Positions 24,923 through 32,500 of a DNA stretch of 64,000 nt are shown one piece after another. The position numbers and the translations under genes are program-made. The notes under the pieces were generated by a model that was not told where the DNA came from, did no database searches, and saw only the letters and a list, made by a program, of their open reading frames with translations. Numbering within the stretch: position 1 is the first letter of the stretch; the number at the start of each line of letters is the position of its first letter. This DNA comes from Hyphochytrium catenoides (Eukaryota > Protista > Hyphochytriomycota): the NCBI GenBank assembly GCA_900088475.1, contig FLMG01001956.1:1-64000 (forward strand), given 5' to 3'.

Positions 24923-27087
24923 ATGGGGAACACAGCTACCTCTTCTAGGATCTTGGAGGCTGGGACTAGTCGAGCCGAAGAGATAGACACTTCTGGGCGT
25001 GATGGCCGAACCAGAGTCCTCTCGATGACAATGGCAGGTAGAGAGGGCGGAAGCTTGCGATTGAGTTCCACATACACACAAAGTTGATATGCTCGCTATG
25101 TCGGTGTCGAGACTTCTTGTCCAGTCAGATAAATCACCCCTTCCTTCCTCTGGTCCCGTGGTGCAGACCTTCAAAACCAGCCATACATTATTCCTGGCAA
25201 CCGTGCCTACACCCCACAACAAATGCAAACTCTGTATCAGACAGGACACAGACCTGACATGGCCTTTTTGCCTTTCCAGAGTCGAATGGTAATCTCGGAT
25301 AGAGTTGAGGTCCTTGGAATGTACTAGCACTCCAGCTTAGTTTTCCTTTCCAAAGTCGCTCCGATCTTCTATGTCTCTTTGCTTGTCTTATTTATCTCTT
25401 TCTGTTTTATCTCCTCTCGCGTAGCTCCAGCACTTCTTTTTCTTCTCCCTTGGTGCTCCGTCCTTCAACCGTAAAACAATTCGCTTGTTCAGGCCTTATC
25501 TAAGGTCTAACTCAACGTTGAACCTCTAGGCCAGACAGCCTCCTGCCATGCAGCCCACTTTGACTATAAAGAATGAAGTCAACGTTTCTAAGAAGTCCGT
25601 TCAATTACATCCTGCAGAGAGTGTGGATGATAAAATAGGAGACAAGTAGGGCCATTACTCTCTTTTGGACTCCCCTGGCGGAGTTTTGGGCCTCACGTGC
25701 TCTTTCTTCATCACTTTTCTTTAGCCTATCCCTTTCATCAACCGCTTCGCCGACCGAGACTGACGCAAAAATGGCATTTGTGTCACACTAGATATTATCT
25801 CTCATTCGCCTTCGATACCAATAAACCCTGCCGTGTATCGTTATACTTTCAGGCAGAGGAGACAGTAAAGGACGGTCAGCTTCGGTAGGTGAAAGATTAT
25901 AAGCTCCTTATCTTATCTTTGTGCCTATGCATCGTCCGTTTTGCTTTCTAAAACCCCATGCGTGGGTCTATCCCCCTTCATCCACCCCTAGAAGACGCTT
26001 TTCACATCATTGACCAGCCCTCACGTAAACGCCTTCCTAAGTCCTTTCCAGTTTCTCTTCTGCAGTCTCTACCCCGGTGTTCTGGTACTTCACAGAGGGA
26101 ATGCAACAGACTTTTGACCAGCGACAGTGCCCGGAACTTCCTGCCCTAGACTTCACAGGACTTCAAGAAAATGAATTACTATATGACCTAGACTCCAAGC
26201 GCATACCCGTCGTTATCTATGTGGAAGCTCTTGCAGGTATTAAGACAAGAAAAAGTGTTGGGAGCTTCCACAGAGAGGGTTGACGCATTAGCGTGACGGG
26301 ATGTGAGGGCCCAAAGCGACTGTCAAGAGCACTCAACAAACAAGGGATGCGGTCTCAAATAGCAGCGCTGGGCTGCAAAAAGGAGACTAAGACTTAACAT
26401 CGAGCAGACGAAGCAGACCGAAAAGTCTTAGGATCTCAAGCCACATACCTCAACCTACTGCGAAGTCCTGGTGGACGACTTGTGGCCCAGGTAGCAAAGC
26501 AGAAAATTGCAGTAAGTGAACATGCTCTTCCCCTTACCTCTCGCCACTTCTCTCTCGCAGTGACGGACGTCCCGTTCCTGCAGAACTCTTTTTGTCCTGC
26601 CTCAAATAACCGCTTTTCTCAACAGGTGGATGGCCACTCTTATGAGCTGCAGGAGATCTACGGTCTAGATGCCAACGAGAAGGTTGACATGACCAACCCA
26701 GCGGGAAGTGACTGCGTGATTTGCTTTTCAGAAAAAAGGGATACAACGGTGCTCCCATGTCGGTAGGATATACATTCTCTTCCATCGTACAAGGTGTTCT
26801 TATGAAGCTGTGAACCTCACCACGTTTATCCCAGTCATATGTGCCTCTGTAGCTATTGCGCTCAACAGCTGCGAACGATCCGCACTGACGTCTTTCGCTG
26901 TCCCATCTGCCGGTGTTTGGTTGAGTCACTGCTGCAAATTCAGCCAGCAGAAGGGAAAAGTGGCCAGCAGACGGACTCAGATCCAGGGTGGCCAAGCACG
27001 GATTCTAAGGGTAATGAGAAAGGACGTTACCCGGTCCCAATGAATGCCAGCCCTCCTAGGCCTTCTGAGACCACCATGAGTCTTTGA
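24923..27087 (+). CDS. MGRN1/RNF157/LOG2-family RING E3 ubiquitin ligase
   Basis: MGNTATSS (myristoylation-type start), TIKNEVNVSKKSVQL, YYLSFAFDTNKPCRVSLYFQAEE, VAKQKIA|VDGHSYELQEIYGL and a C3HC4 RING DCVICFSEKRDTTVLPCR|HMCLCSYCAQQLR...CPICR. Confidence 0.9.
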
Positions 27088-27378
27088 ACAGCAGTGCTTT
27101 TGCCTGTGAACTAGTCCCTCCAAGTACCATTTGTCTTCTGTTTCCACCACCATGTTTTTTCTCTGTTATGTGCACCATGGCGAACTAGGCACATTTGTCT
27201 CTCCCTCCGTCCCATTCTTAATGACGCGTTGGCTTGCTATGCCATACTTTTGTTAGTACGTACATGGCGCGTCTCCACGTACGAAGTACTGAAATAACAC
27301 TAAATCAACAGGAAAAAGATTAGTAGGGACATCCAGCATGTATTATATTAGTCCAAGAAGTATAGCCTAGTATCACGC

Positions 27379-28807
27379 CTAGTATTGCGCCTTCTTTGCA
27401 GCCTCAAGAGCGAGAGCCTTCTCACGCTTCTCAAGACGTCTCTGAGTCTTCAGACCCATGACACCGCCGCCCCACTTGCGGTCAATGGAGTCATTGTACT
27501 GAGCCTTGAAGTTAGAAGCCAGAGTCTCAAGCTTGCTCTTGTCCTCCTTGGTAACGGCGGTGAGAGCAACAGCGGTGGCATTCTTCTTGTGGACCAGAGT
27601 ACCAAGGCGAGCCTTGCCCTTAACGATGCAGTATGGGACGCCCATCTTTCTGCACAGAGCAGGGAGCCAGACAACAAGCTCCACAGGGTCGACATCGTGG
27701 GCAATAACAACCAGCTTTGCCTTCTTGTTCTCAACAAGGTAGGTGATGTGGTTGAGGCCGTACTTCAGCACTGGAGGAGGAGCCGTGGAGGCATCCTTCT
27801 TCTGGGTCTTGTCGACGGCGGCGTTCTTGAGACGGTCCTTCTTCTCTGCCTTCGTCTCAGGCTTGTACTTGACCAGAAGCTTGAACAGGTCAGTCGCCTG
27901 GTTCTTGTCCAGAGCCTTGGAGAACTGGTTCAGCGCAGGAGGAACCTTAAGGCGCTGCTTCAAGATCTTGCGCTGGCGCTGGAGGCGGATGTACCTTGGC
28001 CATCTCACGAAGCGGGAGAGGTCGGTCTTGTGCTGTAAGCGCAAAAGGAGGAAAGCGAAGAAGACGGAGCATGAGCCACTCTGCCAAAGACGTTACTAAA
28101 GAGAAGTTAGTTGCAGGAGCTGCTGCCTCTCACTTCCGGAATGTTTCACATGTGTTGCATCGCCTGATGGCGATCACCCTCGTCACGTCCAACCAAAGAT
28201 GTCTCGCGCTTGGCTGAGACACAGTGGAACCACTGATTTGTATCATTGCGGGGTGGGAGACCGCTAGACGCACAACATGACACTGACTCTGTGTCCATCT
28301 GCCCGAGACTGCCGAATGGGAAGCTCTAGGGGTACAGAAGGGGTCGCACTCTGCCCAGGTTCAAGCTGAGTGGACCAAGAGGCTCAGGTCAAGCGGGTGG
28401 CATGGAAACGCTCACAAGTTTGTGTCATTGCGGAGTGAGGCAGCCGCTAGATGGAGAAGACGATGATTCGTCGCGACAATACTCGTCCCATAAAGGTCAG
28501 AATAGTGTATACGCGATACGTATGCAAACGTCTCCCATCCTGCTATTCTATCATTGCGGGCAGGATGTTCCACCCCGCTAGTAAGGAAGCTCATCGTACC
28601 CTAATGTCACCACCAACACGGAAGTTGCGTGGGGTGGAGGCGAAGAGAGGGCTTGGCTTCACAGCCTTCTTCTTGGGGGCCGCGGCGGGCGCCTTCTTCA
28701 CAACCTTCTTGGACGGCTACGAGAAAAGAACAGCAAGGACAGAGAAGGGTTATTACTTCCTCTCACTTTACAGACCAAAAGACAGCCTATAATCTCCTTA
28801 TTACCAT
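27379..28807 (-). CDS. RPL7A: 60S ribosomal protein eL8 (L7a), 257 aa
   Basis: Exons 28807-28805 (ATG only), 28716-28600 (PSKKVV...[10 protein letters not shown]) and 28032-27379 ([24 protein letters not shown]...[38 protein letters not shown]...KWGGGVMG). Confidence 0.98.
28093..28111 (-). promoter_or_regulatory. Putative alternative (unproductive) branch point and 3' splice site in RPL7A intron 2
   Basis: Sense ACUAAC-uucucuuu-AG|UAA. The AG is at 28097-28096, 63 nt upstream of the productive AG, and the UAA is in frame for this phase-0 intron. Confidence 0.55.
28241..28267 (-). promoter_or_regulatory. Intronic kink-turn-like RNA motif, copy C
   Basis: Sense RNA CUA-GCGG-ucucccacc-CCGC-AAU-GAUA(CAA). 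Confidence 0.6.
28423..28450 (-). promoter_or_regulatory. Intronic kink-turn-like RNA motif, copy B
   Basis: Sense RNA CUA-GCGG-cugccucacu-CCGC-AAU-GACA(CAA). Confidence 0.6.
28549..28581 (-). promoter_or_regulatory. Intronic kink-turn-like RNA motif, copy A
   Basis: Sense RNA CUA-GCGGG-guggaacauccug-CCCGC-AAU-GAUA(GAA), beginning 18 nt after the 5' splice site. Confidence 0.6.
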
Positions 28808-29553
28808 GGTGTCTGGCGTGATCTTCCAGTGCTGGATCTGGCAAGAACTTCAATTGTCCTTGTCCTTGAGCCTCAGCGGAGCGGTGCTTTCCAGCGCCCA
28901 GCGAGACAGCAGCAAAGCCATCAGTGGCGCGGTGGCGGCGGCCACTGAAGATGCCGCTGAGCCACCATCCATTCCTCATGCCACACCTCGTATGGAGGCT
29001 CTACAAATACGCAGTAATATTTAGGTGCAACTCTGACAATCACCCAAAGTTGTGGAAGACCACTACAGAGCCATTCTCGATCTGAAGGCTTGTATTCCCT
29101 GTAGGAGATAGCTATATACCGGATAACTGTTAGGCCTGTAAAACCCTTCTCAACATGGGTGGATGAAGATTTCTGGAAGATTTTTTATTGAAAAGTAGTT
29201 CCTCGAGATGGTTTTGCCGATTCTCTTTTTTGAAGGTTCTTCCCGCCGATACCATCGTCAGTAGCGCTAACATAGTATACTGGTGATCAAGAGGTCAATA
29301 GAAGGGTAAAGATCTGAAGCTGATGAGCGTTAGGGCCTCATGAAGAGTTAGCGCATATAATGGGATTGCGAGGGGCTATTGTGACGTATTTTGATGGTGC
29401 TCTAATAGTGCGTACAGTTAGGTGGGAGAGATGACCAGAACTTGCCGGATTCATAACGGAGACACTTGAACTAAACGAAGCGGGACTAGTCTCCATGATG
29501 CTTTAATTTAGCAGCAAAATAGCGTTAGCAGCATAGTGCGTACTTGTAAGGAA

Positions 29554-32500
29554 CTAGAATCGGTAGACGATGGTTGGCACTTTGCATGGTTCTTCGTTGT
29601 CATCGATGCAGCTAACTTGCAGCTGTACCAGCCTTGCATCGTCAGGCAGAACGACATCGATGACAGCCGCATAGCGCTCTCTGATCCAGTCAACTAGTCT
29701 CTCATCTAACTTGGAGTCATAAAGCTTCTGTAACTCTGGTTTCCATGGCTCTCTGTCGTATAGCATGTTACCGCTGACGGCTGCATAGCGCGAGTCTTCG
29801 GACGAGAGTTCAGCCGCCTTGTGAAATAGAAGCGAGACGCTAAGACCTGTCTTCGCCTTAAATCTATCCAAGAACTCCCTAAGGGTCACGTCTCCTTCGA
29901 TTAAAGTCTACGATGCAAGCTAGAGTCAGCAACCAACCTTGTTCACTAACGAGGAACTGAGTTAACAAGAAGAGAGACACGGAGAAAGGGTTGATGACCA
30001 AGGTGCCTCACTTCCTCTGCCTATATCTGTGCCTCGGCCCTCTCACCAGGCTTGGAATAGCGACAAATGTAGCAAGATGAGGCTGACCATAGGACCGAAG
30101 CTTTAAAGCGTAAGGCACCTTACCTTGTCCCACTTGGTGAACTTGGGTGGAATGCACCGCACCTCCGTCATTTCTATAGGATCATACTCGTCCTTAGCCT
30201 GCTCTGGTGGAGCTGGCTCTTGCATAAGGTAGAGGTTTAGTCCCAAGTTGTTTGACGAATCTTTATAAGCCTCTAGCTTCTTTTTCTGCAAGAGCTTCAG
30301 CAGCTGAAAGTGTCACGGCCAGGGGAGAAGAGGAGCCCATTATTAATATGTAGAGGCAGGAGTAAAGTTAGGAGAGAAAACCCTAACCTACGTTCTCAGG
30401 CCACAAGTGTAAACTGCGACAGGTGAACAGGAGTTGAAGGAAGGCAAGAAAGAACGAAAGACAGAGAAAGGGGGAACAAATCCCTATCGTGCTGGCAATA
30501 CTTCCGAGTGCTCACCTCCATCATCACCAGGCCGCACACTGAGGCGGTGGTGGTCGCAATGGCAGGGATGATCTTCCCTGCAATGAGCTTCACCCTGTGT
30601 CGAGGAACTTCTCTAATGCGGTAGTTCCATGCGCGCAGATTAGCTGCAGCAGTGATAAAGTCGATGTGGAAATTCAGGTCCTGATCCTTCTCAAAATCTG
30701 CTGCCTCAAAAGATAGGCCTACCGCCACAGGAGAGGGCAGAAGGGTCACGATGGAGCAGTAAGCGACAAGTTGCTGGAAAAAAGTAGCCAATGACAAAGT
30801 GACTGGCACATAGGTTTATCAAGAAAGACTCTATCAGAAAGTACCTGTGATAATCATGGAAGCAGGAGTCAAGAAGGCATAAGCAACGGACAAAGTGAGG
30901 TCCTACCATTGAGATTCAGTTGCTCTAGTTCCTTAACTAGATCCTTTAGCGCTTCGTTCTCGTCCACGCCGTCTCCTTTCTCGCCATCTCCTTCTTCTTC
31001 CTCTTCTTCGTCCACCTTGATTTTTTCACTTGACGGGATGAACGCCGGGGTATCCAGTTTTCCCAGGATAGAGGAGACGAACTCATGGCTCCTCCACGGG
31101 GAAGAGGGGGACACGAGTTCTACCTCGGGAGACGGTTGAAGGCCATAGGAGACAGCAAGGAGATTGGCAGTGGCAATAATAAGGTCCAAGTGCTCCTGCT
31201 GAGACAGATCGAATTCTGCTGCCTAGAGAACAGCACAGGAGTCTTGGTCAATGTGATGACCCTCATAAACATCCTCCAGCGCTCTACTATCGCATGCCCA
31301 TTCCTTTCCTATGGACGTAGCCTCTGGCCTTTTGTCCGGGGCGTAAGCTATTCGTCTTGAGTAGGTCCATGCTCTCCTCCAAGCACTCCCTTTTTGACAT
31401 ACCTGAGGAAACCTCTTTGCGCCTGTCCAAAACTTTTCTCCCTTAGAGTTGACATGGTTCTCAGGGAAGTTATGTATGAGCTGGAGGATTCGATCTCTGA
31501 AGAGTGAGTGGAACAAGACAAATGCCTCTTCAACACATCGCTCAAACGTGACGCCTCGGGCCAGACTTAGCGCCTTTTTAATTTGTTTCAAGCGATTAAG
31601 CTCTTGTGAGACTTGGGCTGCTCCTAGCGAGGGGTTTGGATTTTCGAATGTCTTCTGACGAACCTGTCAAGACGCGAGCGAACGTGCTGAGTCCATACGG
31701 CTACAAACTGAAATATCAGCATCACCAATGGAAAGACAAAGGGGAGAAAAGAAAGAAGAACACCTGAGGGGATAGAGAGTAAACGTTCATTACTCTAGGG
31801 AGCTAGTTACGGAGGAAGAAAGCATGGCTGCTAAGACAGACATGAATAGACAGACATGAATGGAAGGGCTCGAGGTTTTAGGACACGTAAGGCTTAAAGG
31901 CTATCAGCCGCGTAAGGCTTGGAGGCTATCAGCCGCGGAAGGAAATTTAGGTTCGTAGAGGCTAGAGGCAATTGTCACCTCTGTAAGGAATTCCTCAGGG
32001 TTCTCCACAAACTTCTTCGCGTCTCCAGGAGGAGCAACGAAGAGGTCTTCAAACTGGGCACGCGCCCATTCAATACAATGTTCGACTGCAAAGTGGCAGG
32101 CAATTGAAAGCAAGGGTCGTTGAGAAGGTGGTCCTTTTGCTAGCATAAAAATTGTACGGTGTCGCATGCCCCCATTTCTGATGTTTGCCTACTCAATCCT
32201 TCTTCAATAGATTCATGGTAAGGAGGTCTTACTTAAGCTGGGGAAGTTCCTCAAAGTGCACATGGGAATATTGTCGTCGGCTGCATCCTTGGGCCCGTCT
32301 GCATAGCTTTGGGTCATGTGGGGAATGATTACCTATACGTGACAAACTTAGTCCTCTACATAAGATGCTTTCTATACAGAAGTAAAAGCTAGCAGGACCG
32401 TTAGAGCGCTACCTGCGCCAAAGTACTACTGGGGTTTACGCGGTGCGAAAGGTTTGGGCCAAACTGCAAAAATGAATTACTACCTGCACGTTGCATTTAG

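Follow-up and report, generated by a model that had tools for sequence, protein, structure and literature searches.

What are three copies of one hairpin motif doing in a single intron of a ribosomal protein gene? The question is raised by a stretch of DNA from Hyphochytrium catenoides (positions 1 to 64,000 of contig FLMG01001956.1, assembly GCA_900088475.1), here called the window, in which the gene for ribosomal protein eL8 (RPL7A) is on the minus strand. Intron 2 of this gene (28599-28033, minus strand) is 567 nucleotides (nt) long, is in phase 0, reads GUACGA...ACAG, and holds three units, W1, W2, and W3. Its sense (minus) strand has three exact copies of CUAGCGG-N(9-15)-CCGCAAUGA. The pattern CTAGCGG-N(5-25)-CCGCAATGA matched three times in the 64-kb window, each time on the minus strand (28581-28551, 28450-25, and 28267-43), and 0/100 dinucleotide-preserving shuffles had a match. 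A scan of both strands of the 64 kb with a covariance model of the motif found no copy beyond W1-W3. An initial annotation, made from the letters of the sequence, had claimed both the three sense-strand copies in the 567-nt intron and the absence of others from the window; the pattern search and shuffles bear out the first claim, and the model scan the second.

The motif was present in the orthologous intron of eL8 genes from distant eukaryotes. We chose eL8 proteins in which a truncated gene model gave away an intron at this position and fetched their loci (L numbers), and we scanned metagenome contigs for the exact pattern. The scan gave 12 loci, one of which (L008) is an eL8 gene; the other 11 are not eL8 genes and look like chance matches. 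The motif-bearing introns share one position, in phase 0 after the GGD(I/V/L)(R/Q) codons of eL8. There is one copy each in Phytophthora ramorum (L016), in Saprolegnia diclina (L017), in the oomycete-like L015, L018/L019, and L144, and in L014 and L023 from other protists. There are three copies in the brown alga Discosporangium mesarthrocarpum (L020), where the bulge and the GA after it read GAU-GA, and three in L008, also from another protist. The L008 protein is 63% identical to the window eL8, and its 224-nt intron, at the same codon position, has units ~40 nt apart, one of them with a covarying stem (GCGAU/AUCGC). On the eL8 tree the carriers fell into several separate clades: the oomycetes with L018, the brown-alga group, L014 with L023, the long-branch L008, and the window with one relative. 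Presence in orthologous eL8 introns had been set beforehand as the test of the motif, and the element was found in the same eL8 intron at nine or more independent loci, spread over several clades. That it has been kept there in such distant eukaryotes is a strong argument for a function tied to the eL8 gene, and we conclude that the motif is very probably a functional structured RNA specific to this eL8 intron.

The units have a conserved stem, S1, that is supported by covariation. The consensus of the aligned copies is UA-[GCGR]-loop-[YCGC]-NAU-GA-YANAA, and the units are 35-46 nt long. S1 is a G+C stem of 4-5 bp, and the 4-bp stem was paired in 64/64 cells of the alignment (16 aligned copies). 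The apical pair was GC in 12 copies, AU in 2, CG in 1, and GU in 1, with three compensatory double changes. This covariation was reached by 1/500 column shuffles, and controls in which the strands were slid dropped to 23-54% paired.

There is a second helix, S2, between the loop of S1 and sequence downstream of it. Each loop is complementary to a segment 2-10 nt after the YANAA of its own unit, over 3-8 bp. The mean pairing energy was -7.3 kcal/mol for cognate segments versus -5.3 kcal/mol for permuted downstream segments, and 6/20,000 permutations were as good as the real pairing (14 copies); an earlier test with 11 copies gave 0/5000. A control that paired the loops with upstream sequence showed no cognate preference. 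These permutation tests are the support for S2; a realignment with an S2-based covariance model left the variable loops out of register. At least nine different helices make up S2, among them UGCCA/UGGCG, CACUC/GAGUG, and UGCU/AGCA in the L008 units, ACCG/CGGU in L023, and CACCG/CGGUG in L020b; in L014 and L020a it is only 3 bp. The 3' half of W2 (AAUGACACAAACUUGUG) is identical in an oomycete copy, and between these two S2 has a compensatory exchange of C-G for U-A. The initial annotation had described conserved stems and flanks with unrelated loops and spacers. The sequences are as described, but the loops are not free to vary, as each is complementary to its own downstream segment.

Since the loop of S1 pairs with a downstream segment, each unit is predicted to be an H-type pseudoknot. 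The order of the strands is S1a-S2a-S1b-S2b, and the connecting loops (L1, 1-7 nt; L2, 0-4 nt; and an A-rich L3, 12-20 nt) have sterically plausible lengths. W1 (28536..28581, minus strand) starts 19 nt past the 5' splice site, with UA at 28580-79, S1 between GCGG (28578-75) and CCGC (28559-56), the AAU bulge at 28555-53, GA at 28552-51, and UAGAA at 28550-46; its 8-bp S2 joins CAUCCUGC (28567-60) to GCAGGAUG (28543-36). In W2 (28411..28450, minus strand), UA is at 28449-48, S1 pairs 28447-44 with 28433-30, AAU is at 28429-27, GA at 28426-25, and CACAA at 28424-20, and S2 joins CUCAC (28439-35) to GUGAG (28415-11). W3 (28230..28267, minus strand) has UA at 28266-65, S1 between 28264-61 and 28251-48, AAU at 28247-45, GA at 28244-43, UACAA at 28242-38, and S2 between CCAC (28256-53) and GUGG (28233-30).

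W1 and W2 were spared by the substitutions that separate the window from a close relative. Public runs X25 and X9 contain a sequence ~91% identical in the intron; the list of its substitutions leaves out 28054-28253, which includes the 3' half of W3. No substitutions were listed in 28524-28599 (W1) or in 28369-28456 (W2 and the 42 nt after it). Substitutions and indels clustered at 28298-28368 (15 + 4) and at 28457-28523 (5 + 1), and the intron sequence adjoining W1 and W2 diverged by 9-25%. The 42-nt block after W2 (28369..28410, minus strand), which is unchanged in the relative, contains CCACCCGC. This is complementary to GCGGGGUGG of W1 (S1a and the loop), which suggests a possible long-range alternative pairing.

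The most conserved nucleotides of the units are those of a kink-turn (k-turn) core. Invariant or nearly so are UA, NAU, GA, and the A at +4, +6, and +7. The bulge was AAU, CAU, or GAU in 16/16 copies, with an invariant A at bulge position L2 and an invariant U at L3, and it is abutted by a Watson-Crick canonical (C) helix, which is S1. The G after the bulge was invariant and the A 5' of S1 was present in 15/16 copies, and at the level of sequence these give the G.A pair at 1b.1n. The initial annotation had read this core (5' A, C stem, 3-nt bulge ending in U, GA, and a non-standard A-U second pair) from the three window copies, and it recurs, invariant or nearly so, in the aligned set. The sheared A.G pair that is standard at 2b.2n was not found: 2b was always A, and 2n was U in 15/16 copies. 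In Kt-23, U is common at 2n and, though non-standard, is the commonest state, and the turn still folds (PMC5061560). A standard k-turn also has a non-canonical (NC) helix beyond its G.A pairs. A helix beyond pair 2, formed by the upstream flank and the sequence after GA, showed no cognate preference in a permutation test (4509/20,000 permutations), and we have dropped that part of the initial annotation. We therefore read each unit as an H-type pseudoknot with a k-turn-like core, a reading made from sequence in which covariation supports both helices.

Intron 2 appears to be selectively retained in RNA of the close relative. In run X25, a unitig through the whole of intron 2 had a depth of 5.8, the contig with the spliced joint had a depth of 31.8, and the depth of intron 1 was 0. 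The unitig reached ~29 nt into each flanking exon before it ended, the bubble pattern of a path that runs beside a spliced one. These assembler depths suggest selective retention of intron 2, at ~15%. The 5' splice site GUACGA in the window is followed by an in-frame UGA (28593-91; both within 28599-28591, minus strand). Because this UGA is the third intronic codon, so that only two extra codons are read, RNA that retains intron 2 would be unproductive.

We believe that the units are probably an autoregulatory splicing element of the eL8 gene, and we give similar credence to eL8 itself as their ligand. The core may be a non-standard k-turn, with G.A at 1b.1n, A.U at 2b.2n, and a bulged U of the kind that is recognised by L7Ae-family proteins. 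The NC helix would be replaced: the A-rich tail (YANAA plus 2-10 nt) would lead back to S2, which is made with the loop of S1. When free eL8 exceeds the demand of ribosome assembly, it would bind the units in its own pre-mRNA and stabilise the k-turn/pseudoknot fold, and removal of intron 2 would be slowed or blocked. The unspliced RNA would be lost to productive use through nuclear decay or nonsense-mediated decay (NMD), giving negative feedback on eL8 synthesis. In this scheme the k-turn geometry, the sign of the regulation, and any cooperation among the three copies are all predictions.

The initial annotation had proposed that the units mimic the site of eL8 on rRNA, and this appears to be true in part at best. 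Autoregulation through mimics of rRNA sites is textbook knowledge for bacterial ribosomal proteins. In helix 15, L7Ae/eL8 recognises Kt-15 by means of a bulged U (PMC3553981), and Kt-15 is a complex k-turn that should need protein to fold (PMC3884654, PMC5061560). We took eukaryotic large-subunit (LSU) rRNA sequences from contaminating contigs in prokaryote assemblies and located the hairpin after the conserved GGCGAGUGAA...YUGAA stretch. That LSU hairpin stands alone in the Rfam LSU alignment of a yeast-like sequence, and it is probably helix 15/Kt-15, an assignment made from the literature and by homology reasoning and not by a tool. The parse A-[hairpin of at least 4 bp]-NNN-GU(A/G)G was found in 28/61 distinct eukaryotic LSU sequences, mostly with GAA as the 5' flank and AUU as the bulge. 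The rRNA site and the intron units share a hairpin-closed helix, a 5' A, a 3-nt bulge that ends in U, and the G that follows. They differ in that the rRNA reads GAA-[hairpin]-AUU-GU-AGUC and the intron reads NUA-[GCGG..CCGC]-NAU-GA-YANAA, with no extended similarity. With so few shared features, mimicry is partial at best: the topology and about three nucleotides agree, but the rRNA has GU where the units have GA, and the motif covariance model found no sense-strand match in LSU rRNA.

The matches of the motif model in rDNA were antisense to LSU rRNA only, and so are meaningless as rRNA mimicry. One weak match (15 bits) was to GCGAAUUCUGCUUCGCAAUGAUAG, at L025:6783-6806 (-) and L108:7558-7581 (+). 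Judging from the yeast 25S sequence and from the orientation of the LSU in L025, this is apparently a conserved LSU segment read as its reverse complement, and would then be an antisense coincidence. Apart from the units, a 28-nt eukaryote-specific LSU rRNA probe matched at least 120 contigs (L024-L143) that are catalogued as bacterial species genomes or metagenome-assembled genomes, indicating that contamination with eukaryotic rDNA is common there. No eukaryotic rDNA was found in viral contigs.

Several observations weigh against the proposed autoregulation. The resemblance to rRNA helix 15 appears limited to topology and about three nucleotides. With U and not G at 2n and no detectable NC helix, true k-turn geometry remains a prediction, and one copy (L008b) has UAU rather than NUA before the stem. 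The motif was missing from L013, L021, and L022, which are eL8 genes with short AT-rich introns at the same position. Restriction of the element to eL8 was judged from the 64-kb window, one metagenome scan with the exact pattern, and the fetched loci. X25 has '?' as its recorded library type and X9 has 'RNA?', and the retention figure is one of assembler depths, not read counts. Between the 5' splice site and the first unit there are 10-20 nt in the window, L008, and L023, but in the oomycetes and the brown alga the element is 165-240 nt from that site. Given this mid-intron position, a simple steric block of the 5' splice site would not be general; the effect on splicing may differ by lineage, or may act otherwise than sterically at this site. 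For an eL8 switch, as the initial annotation had called it, stand the conservation tied to the eL8 gene, the nucleotides of the k-turn core, and the lack of a small nucleolar RNA (snoRNA) signature; the NC helix is unsupported, and the rRNA mimicry is partial at best. The most inclusive claim is that of an ancient, gene-specific riboregulator of eL8 in oomycetes, brown algae, and other protists, in which a k-turn core fused to an H-type pseudoknot, in 1-3 tandem copies, senses free eL8 and gates the splicing of its host intron. We hold this claim only tentatively, at slightly less than an even chance.

A different sensor could have the same architecture. The pseudoknot might be unrelated to L7Ae-type proteins and be a small-molecule riboswitch, a site for some other trans-acting factor, or a fold that tunes the kinetics of splicing. 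In its H-type pseudoknot, whose A-rich third loop runs beside a short G+C stem, each unit is like preQ1-I and other mini-riboswitches, riboswitches also occur as tandem copies, and the conserved A at +4, +6, and +7 exceed what a k-turn needs. We nevertheless consider this explanation unlikely, as no ligand logic connects a metabolite to eL8 alone, and the invariant UA...NAU-GA is exactly a k-turn core in a gene that encodes a k-turn-binding protein. Furthermore, archaeal L7Ae (PMC6298567) and yeast L30 (mentioned in PMC2846911) are regulated via k-turns.

The units might instead bind Snu13/15.5K or another L7Ae-family protein, with hindrance of host-intron excision or interference with the way the tri-snRNP (the triple small nuclear ribonucleoprotein) uses the intron. 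Snu13 sites, such as that of U4 snRNA, typically have the stem, AAU, and GA of this core as their bulged-strand sequence. In a 2026 preprint, thousands of mammalian intronic K-loop RNAs bound by 15.5K are described as suppressing excision of their host introns (10.64898/2026.08.03.742641). Those RNAs resemble the units in being intronic k-turn or K-loop elements with an L7Ae-family binder (here a predicted one) and in the suppression of host-intron excision. They differ in being stable small RNAs with terminal C/D motifs from thousands of genes; the units have no terminal C/D motifs and no conserved D box (CUGA), and apparently occur in one gene. In distant lineages the element keeps to a single intron of a single gene, which fits feedback by a specific product better than the action of a general factor, and we regard binding by Snu13 or a similar protein as improbable.

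It is very unlikely that the units are parts of intron-encoded snoRNAs, of the box C/D or H/ACA type, or of other stable small RNAs. Vertebrate RPL7A hosts snoRNAs, AUGAYA resembles a degenerate C box, and there is a CUGA 40-55 nt downstream of two of the window units. However, Rfam gave no match at gathering thresholds in the whole window and nothing relevant at E<=10 in 27000-30000, which spans the gene. The D box is not conserved across species, there is no ACA or H box at a fixed position, the core reads AUGAYAN where a C box reads RUGAUGA, and the conserved unit is only 35-46 nt; we rejected a box C/D snoRNA on these grounds. Inspection by eye and of the alignment, in which each unit was also considered as a junction of tandem snoRNAs, likewise found no conserved D box, ACA box, or terminal stem, and the ~40-nt spacing in L008 leaves no room for guide sequences. 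A neutral local repeat, which duplication could have placed three times in one intron, is excluded by conservation of the motif in the orthologous intron of eL8 genes whose proteins are only ~63-71% identical, by helices that stay complementary though loops and spacers are wholly different, and by the sparing of W1 and W2 in the relative amid 9-25% divergence.

Yeast L30 and archaeal L7Ae are known examples of an L7Ae-family ribosomal protein that is controlled by way of a k-turn in the protein's own transcript. [quoted passage not shown] Like the system proposed here, it has a ribosomal protein of the L7Ae/L30e fold, a k-turn-type internal loop in that protein's own transcript, and control at splicing; a further likeness is that in three of our species no more than 20 nt separate the first unit from the 5' splice site. 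Unlike it, the eL8 element is wholly intronic, is present in 1-3 copies, has a pseudoknot in place of the NC helix and U at 2n, and is spread over several protist lineages and not within yeasts, and binding by eL8 is predicted.

Archaeal L7Ae, the ortholog of eL8, represses its own translation via stem-loops in the 5' untranslated region (5'-UTR) that have a GAU bulge followed by G:A and A:G pairs (PMC5539422, PMC6298567). [quoted passage not shown] The archaeal RNA is predicted to need protein to fold. It differs in having tandem G:A/A:G pairs and an NC helix, and in occluding the Shine-Dalgarno sequence to control translation, whereas in the intron units the second pair would be A.U, a pseudoknot would replace the NC helix, and control is proposed to be at splicing.

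In Caenorhabditis elegans, rpl-7A is among the ribosomal protein genes for which knockdown raises the gene's own productive splice isoform, and the unproductive isoforms are degraded by NMD (PMC4937301). That system shares with ours a protein of the eL8 family, feedback of product level on productive versus unproductive splicing, and a regulated intron that is unusually conserved; it differs in having no defined cis-element or direct binding (PMC4937301).

The gene itself was identified from its product and its splice joints. The protein has the Pfam domain PF01248, its top named matches are '60S ribosomal protein L7a', and it is at most ~71% identical to named proteins. The start codon ATG (28807-28805) is followed by intron 1 (28804-28717), exon 2 (28716-28600; codons 2-40, ending ...GGDIR), intron 2, and exon 3 (27379 to 28032, read 28032-27379; 217 codons and the stop, with the L7Ae domain), all on the minus strand. 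Exon 2 was placed from the sequence and from joints in RNA contigs on both sides: 28032/28600 and 28716/28805 were found spliced in public RNA contigs, the former in run X25. Intron 2 is 54% pyrimidine and 53% G+C. A branch-point consensus CUAAC, then UUCUCUUUAG, then a UAA in the frame of exon 2 are found at 28094-28111 (minus strand), which puts them ~65-75 nt upstream of the 3' splice site that is used.

Only two introns interrupt the window gene; the first 40 codons hold both of them, and one unbroken exon encodes the L7Ae core. Acanthamoeba is reported to have an 82-nt Rpl7a intron placed among residues that are conserved even in archaeal L7Ae (PMC1201135). The 'ancient Rpl7a intron' of Russell et al. 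is apparently not intron 2, because it is reported as missing from the stramenopiles surveyed there (PMC1201135).

We noted three further features of the eL8 loci from oomycetes and oomycete-like organisms. A second conserved block, CCAAGGGUAAA (CCAAGGUA in Saprolegnia), is ~45-60 nt downstream of the motif in their eL8 introns (L015:2375-2395, L016:2340-2362, L144:133-150, and L017:2345-2360). Upstream of the complete unit in L144 there is a shortened look-alike (L144:7-22), UUAGCG plus AUGACAC without the hairpin loop and the 3' strand of the stem, which is possibly a decayed second copy. A RING-finger gene is directly downstream of eL8 in L015 (4316-5416), L018 (3267-3995), and L144 (1274-2164), indicating local synteny.

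Searches of Rfam 15 and of the full-text literature found no published description of the element; what appears to be new is the intronic element of eL8, its pseudoknot architecture, the tandem arrangement of its copies, and how widely it is distributed among protists. Few eukaryotic ribosomal proteins have a known cis-element for autoregulation, and most of those are from yeast. An element of ~40 nt, defined from distant protists, is a testable candidate for feedback by eL8, and its presence in the laboratory-tractable Phytophthora and Saprolegnia opens the hypothesis to ordinary binding and splicing assays. Pairs of L7Ae and k-turns are widely used in synthetic biology, to which a natural eukaryotic eL8 switch would also be of interest. 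The pseudoknot in place of an NC helix may be a new way to build a k-turn-like platform for a protein. If our interpretation is true, the fold is one that has not been described so far, and the element would be a eukaryotic counterpart, at the level of splicing, of the archaeal L7Ae 5'-UTR switch; self-recognition by L7Ae/eL8 through a k-turn would then have been either kept or reinvented across the archaeal-eukaryotic divide.

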